Positions 1,363-63,671 of a stretch of 64,000 bases of DNA are shown one piece after another. Positions within the stretch are counted from its first letter, which is position 1; each line of letters starts with the position of its first letter. The position numbers and the translations under genes are program-made. Location: contig NC_052168.1 of NCBI RefSeq assembly GCF_902713615.1, positions 5,766,001 through 5,830,000 of the forward strand. Direction: 5' to 3'. The notes beneath the pieces were generated by a model, which saw only the letters and a program-made list of their open reading frames with translations, was not told where the DNA came from and did not search any database. The stretch comes from Scyliorhinus canicula (lineage: Eukaryota).

Positions 1363-4220
1363 TCAGTCACTGTCCCCCAGGGTGAGCTTGTCAAACAGGT
1401 ACTCTCCCGTGCCATTCTCAGGGGCTCCCAGTCTCTTCAGGTTGGTGATGTGATCTCCGAGCTTCTTGATCATCTTCACTTGTTCATCCAAGTAGTGAGT
1501 CTCCAGGAAGTCACAAAGCTGAAAAGAGACAAAACAACATTTCATGTCCAGCAGCAGGCAGAGGATTGTGGGAGCTTCCCTCCAGACAGACGTCAATGTT
1601 ATTCTACCCCTGGAAACTAGGGCAATACCCATCTCACCCAGCCCTTCCCATCAGCAGAAGCAAAGCCATGAGGTTTGGAGAGCCTCCAAATAGTTTCAAG
1701 ACCTACAAGGTTAGGAACTCCAATATACCCCCAGAAATAAAGAACTCACATGAGGGTCAGTGTTCCCAGAGGAGAGTTTGTGCAGATCCAGCAGACTCTG
1801 GTTCACATTCTTCTCCATCTGCAGAGCTCTCTGCATTGCCTCCAGACCATTGCTCCACTCATCCTGCTCTGGTTTCTGAAAGAGGAAAGGCAGACAGCTC
1901 ATTGGATTCAGACACAAGGAAGAACAACCAGAAATTCACATTACTCACAGAAGGATATAGGGTGTGATTGTCCAGAAAGTTAAGTATCCGAGGAAGAACT
2001 TTTAGCCGAAAAGTAAATGACTATTCAACGCGACTAGTGTTGAACACAAGGCCCGAAAAGGGGAAGGCATGGCAGAGGCCACACAGCCTGTTCTGTACAG
2101 TGGGGAGCACTGCTCACCGCAACCCCCATTATGGCAAGAAATGGAGGCCATTTTCAAATGGCTTCCCCTGTCCCCATGCCAGGCATCCTCAGCCCAATCA
2201 CATGTGGAAAAATGCCAGCCTGGCATCCAGATGGCAACCCGATAGTGCCCATGCCAGGTGGCACTGCTGTGCCAAGCTGACACCACCCTGCACAAAGGGC
2301 ATGCAGTTGCAGCCCTCCATATCCCCAGGCAAACCCCCCCCCCCATGAACACTGTTCCATCTCCATTGTGGGGCCCAGTGCTGAACAGCACTCGCCCAAG
2401 GTCTGAGGCAAAGGGAATGAATCCCAAAGGGTCAGATACCTCAGGAATCTGTTATTATCTTGTTCTCATATGCAGATAAGCTAAAAGGAGATTCCTCATC
2501 ATGAATCCTGCCCATAATGACAAATCTCAAGGCATTGCAAGCCAGAGGATCCCAGGAGTGGAGTTTACCAGCTTTCAAAGGAAACTCTGCACGGAGCTGC
2601 TTTTCCAACGCAGAGTGGCCATTGGATTGCACTGAGAATTACTGCATTAAACCATGGCATTGTCAAAGGGGATGCAGAGATCTATCAAGTCCAACCTTGA
2701 CATCCTCCAGGATGATGCGGCCTCCACGTTTATTCTGGAATTCCATCAGTTTCTCAGCGTGTTCCCGTTCCTCATGTGACTGCTCCTTGAAGAACTCGGC
2801 AAAGTGACGCAGGGCAACATCATCCCGGTCAAAATAAAAGGACTGAAGGAGAGAGAATTTTACAAATCACAACTGTTTCCCACCGAAGTCTCAATTTATC
2901 AGCTAATTAGTTTTAAATTAATTCATCAACCATGAACAGGTCTTCTCTAACCAAGAGATCAGGATTATGGTTCATATCCAGCATTAGAATGATGTCTAGT
3001 ATTCTCCCACCATTCGGAGGAGATGGGGAACCAAGACTCCATCTGTGGACAGTCAGATGTAACATTTCTCAGCGCTGCATCTAAAGGAGATCCCCTGATG
3101 CTGGAAAAGTTTATACCCGAATAAATACACAGTGACTGTTCCATACAAGAGCTGGTTGTTGGTGAAACCTTGTGGTGCACAAATTGTTGAAGCACAGAAT
3201 CCCTGCACCACAGAAATAGGCCATTCAGCCCATCTAGCCAACACCAACCCTGAATAGGCACCCTACACAGCCAACACCCCCACCCTATCCCCATGACTCC
3301 ACCCAACTGCCACAGTTCCAGGCACTGAGCAGCAATTCAGCATGGGCAATTCATTTATCCTACACATCATTTAAGTGTGGAAAGAAATCAGAGCACCCAG
3401 AGGAACCCACAGACAGGAGATTGACTGCATGTTTACACAGTTACCCAAGACCATAATTGATCCCAGATCCTTGGCACTGAGAGCACTAAACACCATCATG
3501 GTTACTGCATTTCAAAATGATCAAAATCATTGGGCAATAACAACAGAAACACTCCATCCTTTTTAAAAAAAAAGTTAATCTATACAGGACACAGGCTTCA
3601 CTGGCTAGGTCAACATTTGCTGCCCATCCTTAATTGCCCCAAGATGGTGGTGAGCTGCCTTCTTGAACTATTGCCCATCTAGTGCAGATATCCTCAATGT
3701 GCATAACCCACCTAATGGAACAAGGGATATCCTTCAAACACATTTTACACCAAGTGTTCAGAATGCACTGAACAACACCAGGTATGTGTTTCACTGCCAA
3801 CTGGAAATGTAGATAACAAGCAGGGTCCCCAGCTGCAGTCACCCAACCCCATTGAAACTGGAGCTGGTCTAATGCTAACAACCACTTCCCAGGTTTCTGC
3901 TCCAAATTCAGGCAGCAGCCAGTTTCAGCCATTAAACCTCCCAATGGAGAGCAACTGCTACAAGGAGCAGTCCATTCACTCAACACCACCCAGAATGACA
4001 CTGAAAACTCTCACTGCTCAGTGATTTCTTCAACTTGAGGAAATATAGTTTACAAAGTCACTTCATTCAACTGGAGGAATTTAAGCTTTTCAGAAAGTTG
4101 ACCAAACACAAAACTCACCATGGAGAGGTAAACATAGGAGGAATAGAGCTCCAGGTTGACCTGCTTGTTAACAGCATCCTCACAGTCCTTGTGGTAGTTC
4201 TGACGCACTTGGGAAACCAT
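1363..4220 (-). CDS. Ferritin (heavy-chain-B/middle-subunit-like), copy 1, 176 aa, 4 exons
   Basis: Exons 4119-4220, 2696-2842, 1750-1875, 1363-1518, all GT-AG, phase 0. [26 protein letters not shown]...[12 protein letters not shown]...[15 protein letters not shown]...[14 protein letters not shown]. Ferroxidase residues E24,Y31,E58,E59,H62,E104,Q138 present. AATAAA at 1241-1246. Confidence 0.96.
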
Positions 4221-4258
4221 CCTCACTATTATTACTCACTGTCACCAAAATGTTGTAG

Positions 4259-62900: not shown

Positions 62901-63671
62901 ATTATAGGAAGGATGTGGAAGCTTTGGAAAGGGTTCAGAGGAGATTTACAAGGTGTTGCCTGTATGGAGGGAAGGTCTTGCGAGGAAAGGCTCAGGGACT
63001 TGAGGTTGTTTTCGTTAGAGAGGAGAAGGCTGAGAGGTGACTTAATAGACATATAAGATAGTCAGAGGGTTAGATGGGGTGGACAGTGAGAGTCTTTTTC
63101 CTCGGATGGTGATGACCAACACGAGGGGACATAGCTTTAAATTGAGGGGTGGTAGATATAGGAGAGATGTCAGAGGCAGTTTCTTTACTCCGTAGTAGAG
63201 GTGTGGAACGCCCTGCCTGCAACAGTAGTAGACTCGCCAACTTTAAGGGCATTTAAGTGGTCACTGGATAGACATGGATGAAAATGGAATAGTGTAGGTC
63301 AGATGGTTTCACAGGTCGGTGCAACATCGAGGGCCGAAGGGCCCGTACTGCGCTTCTATGTACATCTGACTGAGGTGCCTTGAGCTTTTTCAGGGGACTG
63401 CTGCTGGAGACTGCCCCAGGAATTCTGGATAAAATTGCCTTCATCTGAGGAATCCAGTTAATTCTTGACATTTCCTGCTGGATGTTAATTACTTCTCCCC
63501 TTTTTTTTCTTTCAGCTTTGTGACTTCCTGGAGTCTCACTACTTGGATGAACAAGTGAAGATGATCAAGAAGCTCGGAGATCACATCACCAACCTGAAGA
63601 GACTGGGAGCCCCTGAGAATGGGACGGGAGAGTACCTGTTTGACAAGCTCACCCTGGGGGACATCGACTGA
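59945..63671 (+). CDS. Ferritin copy 9, 176 aa
   Basis: Exons 59945-60046, 61318-61464, 62097-62222, 63516-63671; GT-AG. MAAQVRQ, HFAKFF, FLESHY, GDID*. AATAAA near 63789. Confidence 0.96.
62268..63360 (+). mobile_element. CR1 LINE fragment in copy 9 intron 3
   Basis: [43 protein letters not shown]; frameshifted. Confidence 0.92.

Follow-up and report, generated by a model that had tools for sequence, protein, structure and literature searches.

Most vertebrates possess a few ferritin genes, which are controlled through an iron-responsive element (IRE). Ferritin paralogs without an IRE, serving a specialised compartment or the germline, include snail yolk ferritin, which is secreted, mammalian FTMT, which is intronless and mitochondrial, and FTHL17, which lacks ferroxidase activity; all of them occur as single genes or as retrogene families. 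In teleosts, H-like ferritin genes (fthl27-31) have undergone a lineage-specific tandem amplification that was read as a dosage effect; they are expressed in most tissues and are linked to tolerance of reactive oxygen species (ROS). The fthl27 cluster of the hadal snailfish comprises 14 copies, for which an antioxidant/ROS role was proposed.

Among sharks, a preprint describing the Greenland shark genome reported 155 FTL and 179 FTH1 copies arranged in three clusters, said to be in identical synteny in the white shark, with duplications dated to 250 My ago or earlier; in the Greenland shark the largest of these clusters showed ovary-specific expression by RNA-seq (10.1101/2024.09.09.611499). 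This account consists of one paragraph of copy numbers, with FTL and FTH1 labels assigned by best human hit, and it covers neither Scyliorhinus canicula nor IRE status, promoter structure or the pattern of exons versus introns. Literature searches gave no further publication on ferritin arrays of sharks, and the word 'ferritin' has zero occurrences in the S. canicula genome paper (PMC11979771).

The DNA analyzed here is a 64-kb stretch (the window) from a chromosome of 27.7 Mb. Its proteins are identical to S. canicula RefSeq entries named "ferritin heavy chain B-like" (XP_038639702.1, XP_038639675.1 and XP_038639671.1; assembly GCA_902713615.2), so that an earlier interpretation made from the letters alone (the sequence-only reading) had rightly suspected a shark. 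It had also treated the array as novel, which is not the case: the expansion of ferritin genes in sharks was already reported in 2024 for the Greenland shark (10.1101/2024.09.09.611499) and RefSeq already lists the catshark genes. The array by itself is therefore a modest finding; novelty may rather lie in the missing IRE and in the restriction of conservation to exons. The interpretation that we prefer, at a probability of roughly 0.75, is that the window is a real slice of an amplified array of IRE-less H-type genes which would supply the oocyte with ferritin in bulk and independently of iron, and whose exons are probably homogenised.

Gene content and extent of the array

Searches by blastn with the four exons of the first copy and by low-stringency tblastn located five ferritin loci on the minus strand and four on the plus strand, nine in all, and revealed no further ferritin fragments in the 64-kb window. 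The loci (L1 to L9) and associated features are as follows:

1363-4220, minus strand: L1, intact four-exon ferritin gene, 176 aa, exactly XP_038639702.1
4119-4220, 2696-2842, 1750-1875 and 1363-1518, minus strand: exons of L1
4286-4294, minus strand: TATA box of L1 (its AATAAA lies about 117 nt past the stop codon)
4221-4520, minus strand: promoter and 5′UTR of L1, representative of the eight intact copies
4946-5923, plus strand: degraded LINE reverse-transcriptase fragment in the L1-L2 spacer
8065-10956, minus strand: L2, intact ferritin gene, 176 aa, recent tandem duplicate of L1, with Lys131
14728-19234, minus strand: L3, intact ferritin gene, 176 aa, older member of the L1/L2 duplication group
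24340-27217, minus strand: L4, intact ferritin gene, 176 aa, introns unrelated to those of L1-L3
32764-34704, minus strand: L5, intact ORF, 177 aa, altered C-terminus, with Lys131; last minus-strand copy
38410-39753, plus strand: L6, pseudogene with exons 2-4 only, at the switch from minus to plus orientation
42178-45468, plus strand: L7, intact ferritin gene, 176 aa, exactly XP_038639675.1
52348-55659, plus strand: L8, intact ferritin gene, 176 aa, introns 1-2 common with L9
59945-63671, plus strand: L9, intact ferritin gene, 176 aa, XP_038639671.1; intron 3 enlarged to 1293 nt

The number of loci, their orientation and the tally of at least eight intact copies (seven encoding 176 aa and L5 encoding 177 aa) plus one pseudogene agree with the sequence-only reading; its description of all nine as four-exon loci holds for the eight intact genes, and the ninth, L6, is a three-exon remnant. 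In L6 exon 1, the promoter and the usual stop codon are missing, AA replaces the GT donor of exon 2, and no AATAAA occurs within 550 nt; the ferroxidase residues encoded by exons 2-4 are retained. Exons of 102, 147, 126 and 156 nt, the canonical GT-AG splice sites noted earlier (at every intron) and an ORF of 176 aa are common to L1-L4 and L7-L9. In the case of L5, the C-terminal codons (…GEMDL) and the 3′ flank are different.

According to gene calls, another ferritin gene of 176 aa lies approx. 3.9 kb from L1 on its left side, and L9 is followed on its right side by two that encode 173 aa. The nine loci therefore belong to a large tandem cluster, and the window is a 62-kb slice of a much larger array that continues not only past the left edge, as had been suspected, but also on the right.

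The remaining sequence contains dispersed elements. Pieces related to the LINE of the L1-L2 spacer were present at approx. 12.0-12.9 kb, at 47.6-48.3 kb and inside intron 3 of L9. Most of the long intergenic ORFs had no match in Pfam, the exceptions being reverse-transcriptase fragments and a single ALKBH8_N match (49441-50091), which we take to be the tail of a LINE.

The encoded proteins contain the ferritin domain (Pfam PF00210, 9e-41, residues 15-154), and their best solved relative is bullfrog ferritin (PDB 1bg7, 1e-88, residues 1-175). All eight intact copies keep the ferroxidase residues E24, Y31, E58/E59, H62, E104 and Q138 (numbering counts the initiator Met), by which every one of them is of the H-type and predicted to be ferroxidase-competent, in contrast to the mixture of FTL and FTH1 labels in the preprint. 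Two copies, L2 and L5, carry Lys at position 131 of the three-fold channel, and the subunits therefore need not all be equivalent.

The window copies resemble the Greenland shark clusters in being tandem, full-length, intron-containing elasmobranch ferritin genes. With skate FTH1 (loci L001 and L002) they share approx. 75% protein identity and identical intron positions, after codons 34, 83 and 125 (exons of 102, 147 and 126 nt plus the last exon), and their ferroxidase and three-fold-channel residues are the same as in canonical FTH1. In contrast to the skate loci, which have no neighboring ferritin gene, the array copies are tandemly amplified and form a separate clade. In a tree that combined them with array-type ferritins of the white shark and of ten further species of elasmobranchs (Greenland shark sequences were left out), all fell in this one clade, distinct from canonical FTH1 (SH-aLRT 95), and paralogs clustered by lineage, the window copies nesting, together with sequences of S. 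canicula and S. torazame, inside the diversity of other sharks.

Promoters and the iron-responsive element

Each of the eight intact copies has its own promoter, as the sequence-only reading had stated: TATAAATAC is invariant 74 nt upstream of the ATG in all of them, and several ATTGG boxes (inverted CCAAT) lie upstream. In L1, which is representative, the elements comprise ATTGG boxes, a TGATGTCA element and TATAAATAC at −74. The promoters are 75-85% conserved where introns are random, with the TATA and CCAAT boxes invariant. At the other end of the genes, AATAAA is found 67-120 nt past the stop codon in 8/8 intact copies, and the 3′UTR is approx. 130 nt long.

As judged from the position of the TATA box, the 5′UTR would be only about 45 nt long and devoid of an IRE, whereas canonical FTH1 has a long 5′UTR containing a canonical IRE. 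RefSeq assigns L9 a gene span of 7 kb, and upstream exons may therefore exist; yet there is no IRE anywhere in the window. Rfam models IRE_I and IRE_II gave no hit at the gathering score or at E≤10 over the whole 64 kb (nor did Rfam as a whole return anything credible there), and our own motif scan, run on the sense strand upstream of each copy, was likewise negative for a C-N5-CAGWGH hairpin. Both methods recognized the IRE of skate FTH1, used as a positive control (IRE_I, 46.7 bits, 100-136 nt upstream of the ATG). The element was also missing from the sampled array loci of Heptranchias, Rhincodon and Chiloscyllium.

By this feature the array copies would fall outside the canonical IRP-regulated cytosolic ferritins (FTH1/FTL), which carry an IRE. 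Since they have none, their mRNAs should not be subject to translational repression by IRPs, and the amount of ferritin made would depend on transcription and gene number instead of IRP control. A non-canonical IRP site or another form of translational control is compatible with the absence of an IRE at the sequence level.

Probable role of the amplified genes

Each intact copy may be regarded as a self-contained unit composed of a CCAAT/TATA promoter, a 5′UTR of about 45 nt, four exons and a 3′UTR of about 130 nt. The sequence-only reading had proposed a dosage-amplified battery for a specialised tissue or stage, with oocyte/embryo at the head of its list, which fits the ovary expression reported for the Greenland shark. 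The structural part of this proposal stands, as the copies are intact, have their own promoter and poly(A) signal, keep the ferroxidase residues and show a dN/dS of about 0.3; the part concerning tissue derives from the Greenland shark preprint. Because a cluster of that species was reported to be ovary-specific, the most likely role is the provision of bulk, iron-independent ferritin to the large yolky oocyte, by analogy with another species and with one paragraph of a preprint. Blood, epithelium and eye, also named as possible sites, are without support.

The closest functional analogy is snail yolk ferritin. Yolk ferritin, FTMT and FTHL17 differ from the shark copies, in which introns and the catalytic site are both preserved and the 176-aa ferritin core carries no extension with room for a targeting peptide.

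The array might alternatively act as a somatic stress or antioxidant battery, expressed broadly (in liver, blood and epithelia) and buffering iron and ROS rather than supplying oocytes. Teleosts provide a precedent, in which tandem ferritin expansion is combined with broad, high expression and ROS protection, although the teleost clusters are much smaller and of independent origin; a constitutively translated, IRE-less ferritin would suit this role too, and a CCAAT/TATA promoter is not in itself germline-specific. We nevertheless consider it unlikely, as the sole expression data for a shark cluster, those from the Greenland shark, are ovary-specific, and the expansion is common to ecologically very different sharks, which argues against a link with one stressful habitat.

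Divergence of exons and introns

Among the copies, proteins are 94.3-98.3% and coding sequences 96.0-98.9% identical. The term 'near-identical' applied to the genes by the sequence-only reading is thus appropriate for the exons but not for the introns: alignments spanning introns were possible only for L1/L2/L3 and L8/L9, in the remaining pairs the alignable part was confined to the exons, about 20% of the gene, and transposon pieces are all that most intron pairs have in common. L1 and L2 lie within a direct repeat of 8.9 kb with 90.8% identity (approx. 9% divergence), and the L3 gene is 84-86% identical to theirs. Even in recent duplicates the divergence of exons was 5-7 times below that of introns (Fisher p<1e-5). 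Mean dN was 0.018; mean dS was 0.055, far below the divergence of introns (dN/dS 0.33, reaching approx. 1 in some pairs); a value of about 0.3 is rather relaxed for ferritin.

The contrast between exons and introns, together with the clustering of paralogs by lineage, suggests either homogenisation limited to exons or synonymous constraint. Synonymous constraint would produce the same contrast as gene conversion. The four-gamete test was failed by 39 of the 78 informative site pairs, an excess reached in 0-2 of 400 simulations with moderate rate heterogeneity and commonly when heterogeneity was extreme and mutations more numerous; it is only suggestive of gene conversion, because recurrent mutation under such extreme heterogeneity can yield it.

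L4 and L7 share 178 nt (92% identity) at the 3′ end of intron 2, beside exon 3, which may be a conversion tract, although an isolated case. A strong match between introns 1 of L5 and L7, considered as a recombinant mosaic, was dropped, since it corresponds to a dispersed repeat of approx. 300 nt. Dating of the duplications by orthologous introns (catshark versus Heptranchias, Rhincodon and Chiloscyllium loci) was likewise given up, the matches being only this repeat and LINE pieces.

The data bear on a further explanation, that the array is evolutionary baggage: unequal crossing-over makes the copies, one or a few of them are transcribed, and the ORFs stay intact through gene conversion and not through selection on each copy. 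In its favor, one locus of the nine has already decayed to a pseudogene, stops or frameshifts often disable the sampled loci of other sharks, and the dN/dS values and the homoplasy indicative of conversion point the same way. Set against this are the eight intact ORFs with all catalytic residues, the conservation of the promoters with their invariant boxes and the poly(A) signal in every intact copy, so that we give this explanation about one chance in ten. Least probable by far is an assembly artefact with haplotigs or a mis-expanded repeat placed in tandem – in repeat-rich 4-Gb genomes a general risk, to which the direct repeat holding L1 and L2 might be referred – because even these two differ far more than allelic haplotypes are expected to, among the other copies the introns are unrelated and vary in length and the spacers and transposon insertions differ as well, and comparison with other chondrichthyans, as the sequence-only reading had suggested, revealed comparable arrays in independent assemblies of more than 10 shark species. 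Processed pseudogenes were rejected because introns are present.

Under the preferred interpretation, that of an amplified oocyte array, the duplications would range from recent (L1/L2) to old (copies with unalignable introns), the exons, including their synonymous sites, would be held at 96-99% identity probably by gene conversion or unequal exchange together with purifying selection, and a rearrangement at the orientation switch may have left L6 as a 5′-truncated pseudogene. A broader proposal, which we put forward tentatively and with somewhat less than even confidence, is that shark arrays represent an ancient IRP/IRE-free class of ferritins, in which near-identity is maintained in the exons only, owing either to exon-anchored conversion or unequal exchange or to unusually strong synonymous constraint, and the introns diverge until they are random.

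Conservation confined to exons makes paralogs look young by their coding sequences and old by their introns. If the proposal is true, this pattern would reconcile the '250-My-old duplications' of the preprint with lineage-specific clustering, and the array would be a vertebrate protein-coding counterpart of the concertedly evolving oocyte batteries (oocyte 5S rRNA and histone arrays). Exon-only conservation also provides a clean setting in which to study how protein-coding arrays evolve in concert. It is unusual for a vertebrate to possess intact ferritin genes by the dozens to hundreds, and copies without an IRE imply a second ferritin system in sharks, independent of iron sensing and probably serving the provisioning of very large eggs.

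Ferritin loci of the window

With the four exons of L1 as probes, followed by a low-stringency protein search of the window, we identified exactly nine ferritin loci (L1-L9, numbered from left to right), and the combined searches revealed no ferritin fragments outside them:

L1, 1363-4220, minus strand, intact ferritin gene, 176 aa
L2, 8065-10956, minus strand, intact ferritin gene, 176 aa
L3, 14728-19234, minus strand, intact ferritin gene, 176 aa
L4, 24340-27217, minus strand, intact ferritin gene, 176 aa
L5, 32764-34704, minus strand, open reading frame, 177 aa, variant end
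L6, 38410-39753, plus strand, remnant
L7, 42178-45468, plus strand, intact ferritin gene, 176 aa
L8, 52348-55659, plus strand, intact ferritin gene, 176 aa
L9, 59945-63671, plus strand, intact ferritin gene, 176 aa

The loci are separated by spacers of 2.4-6.9 kb. L1-L4 and L7-L9 share exon sizes (102, 147, 126 and 156 nt), GT-AG borders of all introns and an ORF of 176 aa. The frame of L5 is also open; its final codons deviate, giving 177 aa, and its 3′ flank does not resemble those of the other copies. The sequence-only reading of eight intact copies (L1-L5, L7-L9) and one pseudogene was therefore correct, as were its count of nine loci and their strands (five minus, four plus); its assignment of four exons to every locus fails for L6, which has three. 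This remnant lacks a promoter and exon 1, the donor site of exon 2 reads AA, the stop codon is absent from the usual position, no poly(A) signal is found nearby, and positions invariant in the other copies are substituted. Since L6 lies at the point where gene orientation changes from minus to plus, we infer that it is a casualty of rearrangement there.

The encoded proteins match Pfam Ferritin (PF00210, 9e-41). Among solved structures, bullfrog ferritin (1bg7, 1e-88) is the best match, ahead of many H- and M-chain ferritins. Each of the eight intact copies retains the full set of six ferroxidase positions, and the introns occupy the same positions as those of skate FTH1. The window ferritins are of the H type and predicted to be catalytically competent. 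Three of the proteins have identical counterparts in RefSeq, the S. canicula entries XP_038639702.1, XP_038639675.1 and XP_038639671.1 ("ferritin heavy chain B-like"), whose genes map to a sequence of 27.7 Mb in assembly GCA_902713615.2; this confirms the suspected shark source. The suspected extension of the array was confirmed on both sides by gene calls, which place another 176-aa ferritin gene approx. 3.9 kb to the left of the window and two ferritin genes of 173 aa to the right of L9. The protein tree does not resolve the two lengths, 173 and 176 aa, into separate trans-species subfamilies. The RefSeq span of L9 is 7 kb, beginning approx. 3.3 kb upstream of its ATG.

The L3-L4 spacer contains a GC-rich minisatellite (21119-21950; 15.1 copies of a 55-bp unit, 96% identity), which accounts for long spurious ORFs on both strands at 20.2-22.1 kb. 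Two adjoining long ORFs occur on the minus strand at 49441-50651; one matches Pfam ALKBH8_N (4e-13) and probably represents a LINE tail, not a gene.

Promoters, transcript ends and iron-responsive elements

In an alignment of the 300 nt that precede the start codon in the eight intact copies, TATAAATAC is invariant at 74 nt before the ATG and is accompanied by a TGATGTCA element and several inverted CCAAT boxes (ATTGG), in agreement with the proposal that each intact copy has its own TATA promoter. Given a transcription start approx. 30 nt after the TATA box, the 5′UTR would be only approx. 45 nt long. AATAAA is present 67-120 nt past the stop codon in all eight copies. Two types of 3′UTR were observed: one shared by L1-L3 and a moderately conserved one shared by L4, L7, L8 and L9 (24340-24460, 45468-45600, 55659-55780 and 63671-63800). 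The 3′ end of L5 is of a third, unrelated kind.

An Rfam search for the iron-responsive element (IRE) was blank across the 64 kb, on both strands, at the gathering score and at E<=10, and a C-N5-CAGWGH hairpin scan of the window gave five loose matches, none of which lies 5′ of a ferritin gene in the sense orientation. In contrast, both methods detected a textbook IRE (46.7 bits) in the positive control, the canonical FTH1 of two skates, 100-136 nt upstream of the ATG; a separate remark of the sequence-only reading, that the IRE is missing, is thereby upheld. Array loci sampled from Heptranchias, Rhincodon and Chiloscyllium likewise gave no IRE at E<=10. Lack of the IRE thus appears to characterise the array clade as a whole. 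Absence of the IRE implies that translation would be independent of IRP and of iron status.

Divergence of exons and introns

Introns can be aligned only within the groups L1/L2/L3 and L8/L9. All other pairs align in exons only: their ungapped identity drops from 96-99% in exons to approx. 25% (random level) within approx. 20 nt of each splice site. Intron local alignment scores are mostly indistinguishable from those of shuffles, and most introns retain weak residual similarity (65-75%, short stretches) or transposon pieces only. The copies, described earlier as near-identical, are so in their exons but, for most pairs, not in their introns. Since haplotigs or assembly stutter cannot yield exon-only similarity, and the copies differ in intron lengths, spacers and transposon fragments, an assembly artefact is excluded. 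L1 and L2 lie within an 8.9-kb direct repeat (90.8% identity). In recent duplicates, introns are 5-7 times more diverged than exons (Fisher p 4e-6 to 2e-25):

L1-L2, exons 1.1%, introns 5.2%
L1-L3, exons 2.6%, introns 18.5%
L8-L9, exons 2.6%, introns 14.9%

Several catshark ferritin introns (L5 intron 1, 33900-34500; L7 intron 1, 42660-43000; others) contain, in both orientations, a SINE- or MITE-like dispersed repeat of approx. 300 nt, which is also present in the sampled Chiloscyllium locus (2512-2838, 8468-8640, 14870-15174, 18476-18656). Apparent intron homology of non-sister copies at this repeat was rejected as mimicry.

For the eight intact copies, dN averages 0.018 and dS 0.055 (ratio 0.33). 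Every between-species dS (0.11 Chiloscyllium, 0.18 Rhincodon, 0.24 Heptranchias) equals or exceeds the within-window maximum of 0.09. The protein tree separates the array-type ferritins, as a clade with support 95, from canonical FTH1; inside this clade, paralogs group by lineage, not as trans-species orthologs. The four-gamete test was failed by 39 of 78 informative site pairs, an excess that in simulations was rare with moderate rate heterogeneity and attainable with extreme heterogeneity; of the six differences that separate the recent duplicates L1 and L2, four involve states also present in other copies. These site patterns may be signs of exchange between copies. At position 131, in the three-fold channel, Glu is replaced by Lys in L2 (codon 8203-8205) and L5 (32902-32904), which are non-sisters by intron similarity, and L1, the recent duplicate of L2, retains Glu. 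Patchily distributed variants were also observed at residues 80, 82 and 174; such variants, including Glu131Lys, look like short-tract gene conversion. Taken together, the divergence, tree and exchange data point either to exon-confined concerted evolution or to strong constraint on synonymous sites.

Breadth among sharks and possible role

According to the Greenland shark genome preprint, that genome contains 155 FTL and 179 FTH1 copies, approx. 80% of them in three clusters with identical synteny in the white shark; the duplications were judged at least 250 My old, and expression of the largest cluster was reported as ovary-specific (10.1101/2024.09.09.611499). The array seen in the window is real, and shark ferritin arrays of this kind were already known. 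Our literature search found no further paper on the shark expansion, and the S. canicula genome paper was listed with no occurrence of the word "ferritin". A teleost precedent is the hadal snailfish, with 14 fthl27 copies in a tandem ferritin expansion. Our protein search agrees with the preprint on breadth: array-type ferritins (85-93% identity) were found in eleven genera (Scyliorhinus, Mustelus, Carcharodon, Cetorhinus, Rhincodon, Stegostoma, Chiloscyllium, Heterodontus, Heptranchias, Pristiophorus and Pristis), with some 90%-identity clusters comprising 127-180 member sequences. Dead copies are numerous in the array loci of other sharks (Heptranchias 146-2067; Rhincodon 3046-5834; Chiloscyllium 4300-9490 and 12174-15876), and three of them (Heptranchias Hper1 and both Chiloscyllium copies) carry an identical CAG-to-TAG stop at codon 7 (QV[C/W]*NYH).

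At the sequence level, the window holds many independent, complete and catalytically intact ferritin genes with a common CCAAT/TATA promoter and no IRE. Output of their product, presumably a cytosolic H-type 24-mer, would scale with transcription and copy number, without iron-dependent translational repression. The sequence-only reading had proposed a dosage-amplified battery for a specialised tissue; this is supported in part, in that its oocyte suggestion fits the ovary expression reported for another shark. By analogy, the tissue would be the ovary, and this expression suggests that the array may equip the large, yolk-rich egg with a capacity for iron storage or antioxidant defence. The rivals to egg provisioning are a somatic antioxidant role and an array that is mostly idle and maintained by conversion.

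What the window adds to the known expansion, and where its interest mainly lies, is the absence of the IRE, which concerns regulation, and the exon-only conservation, which concerns evolution.
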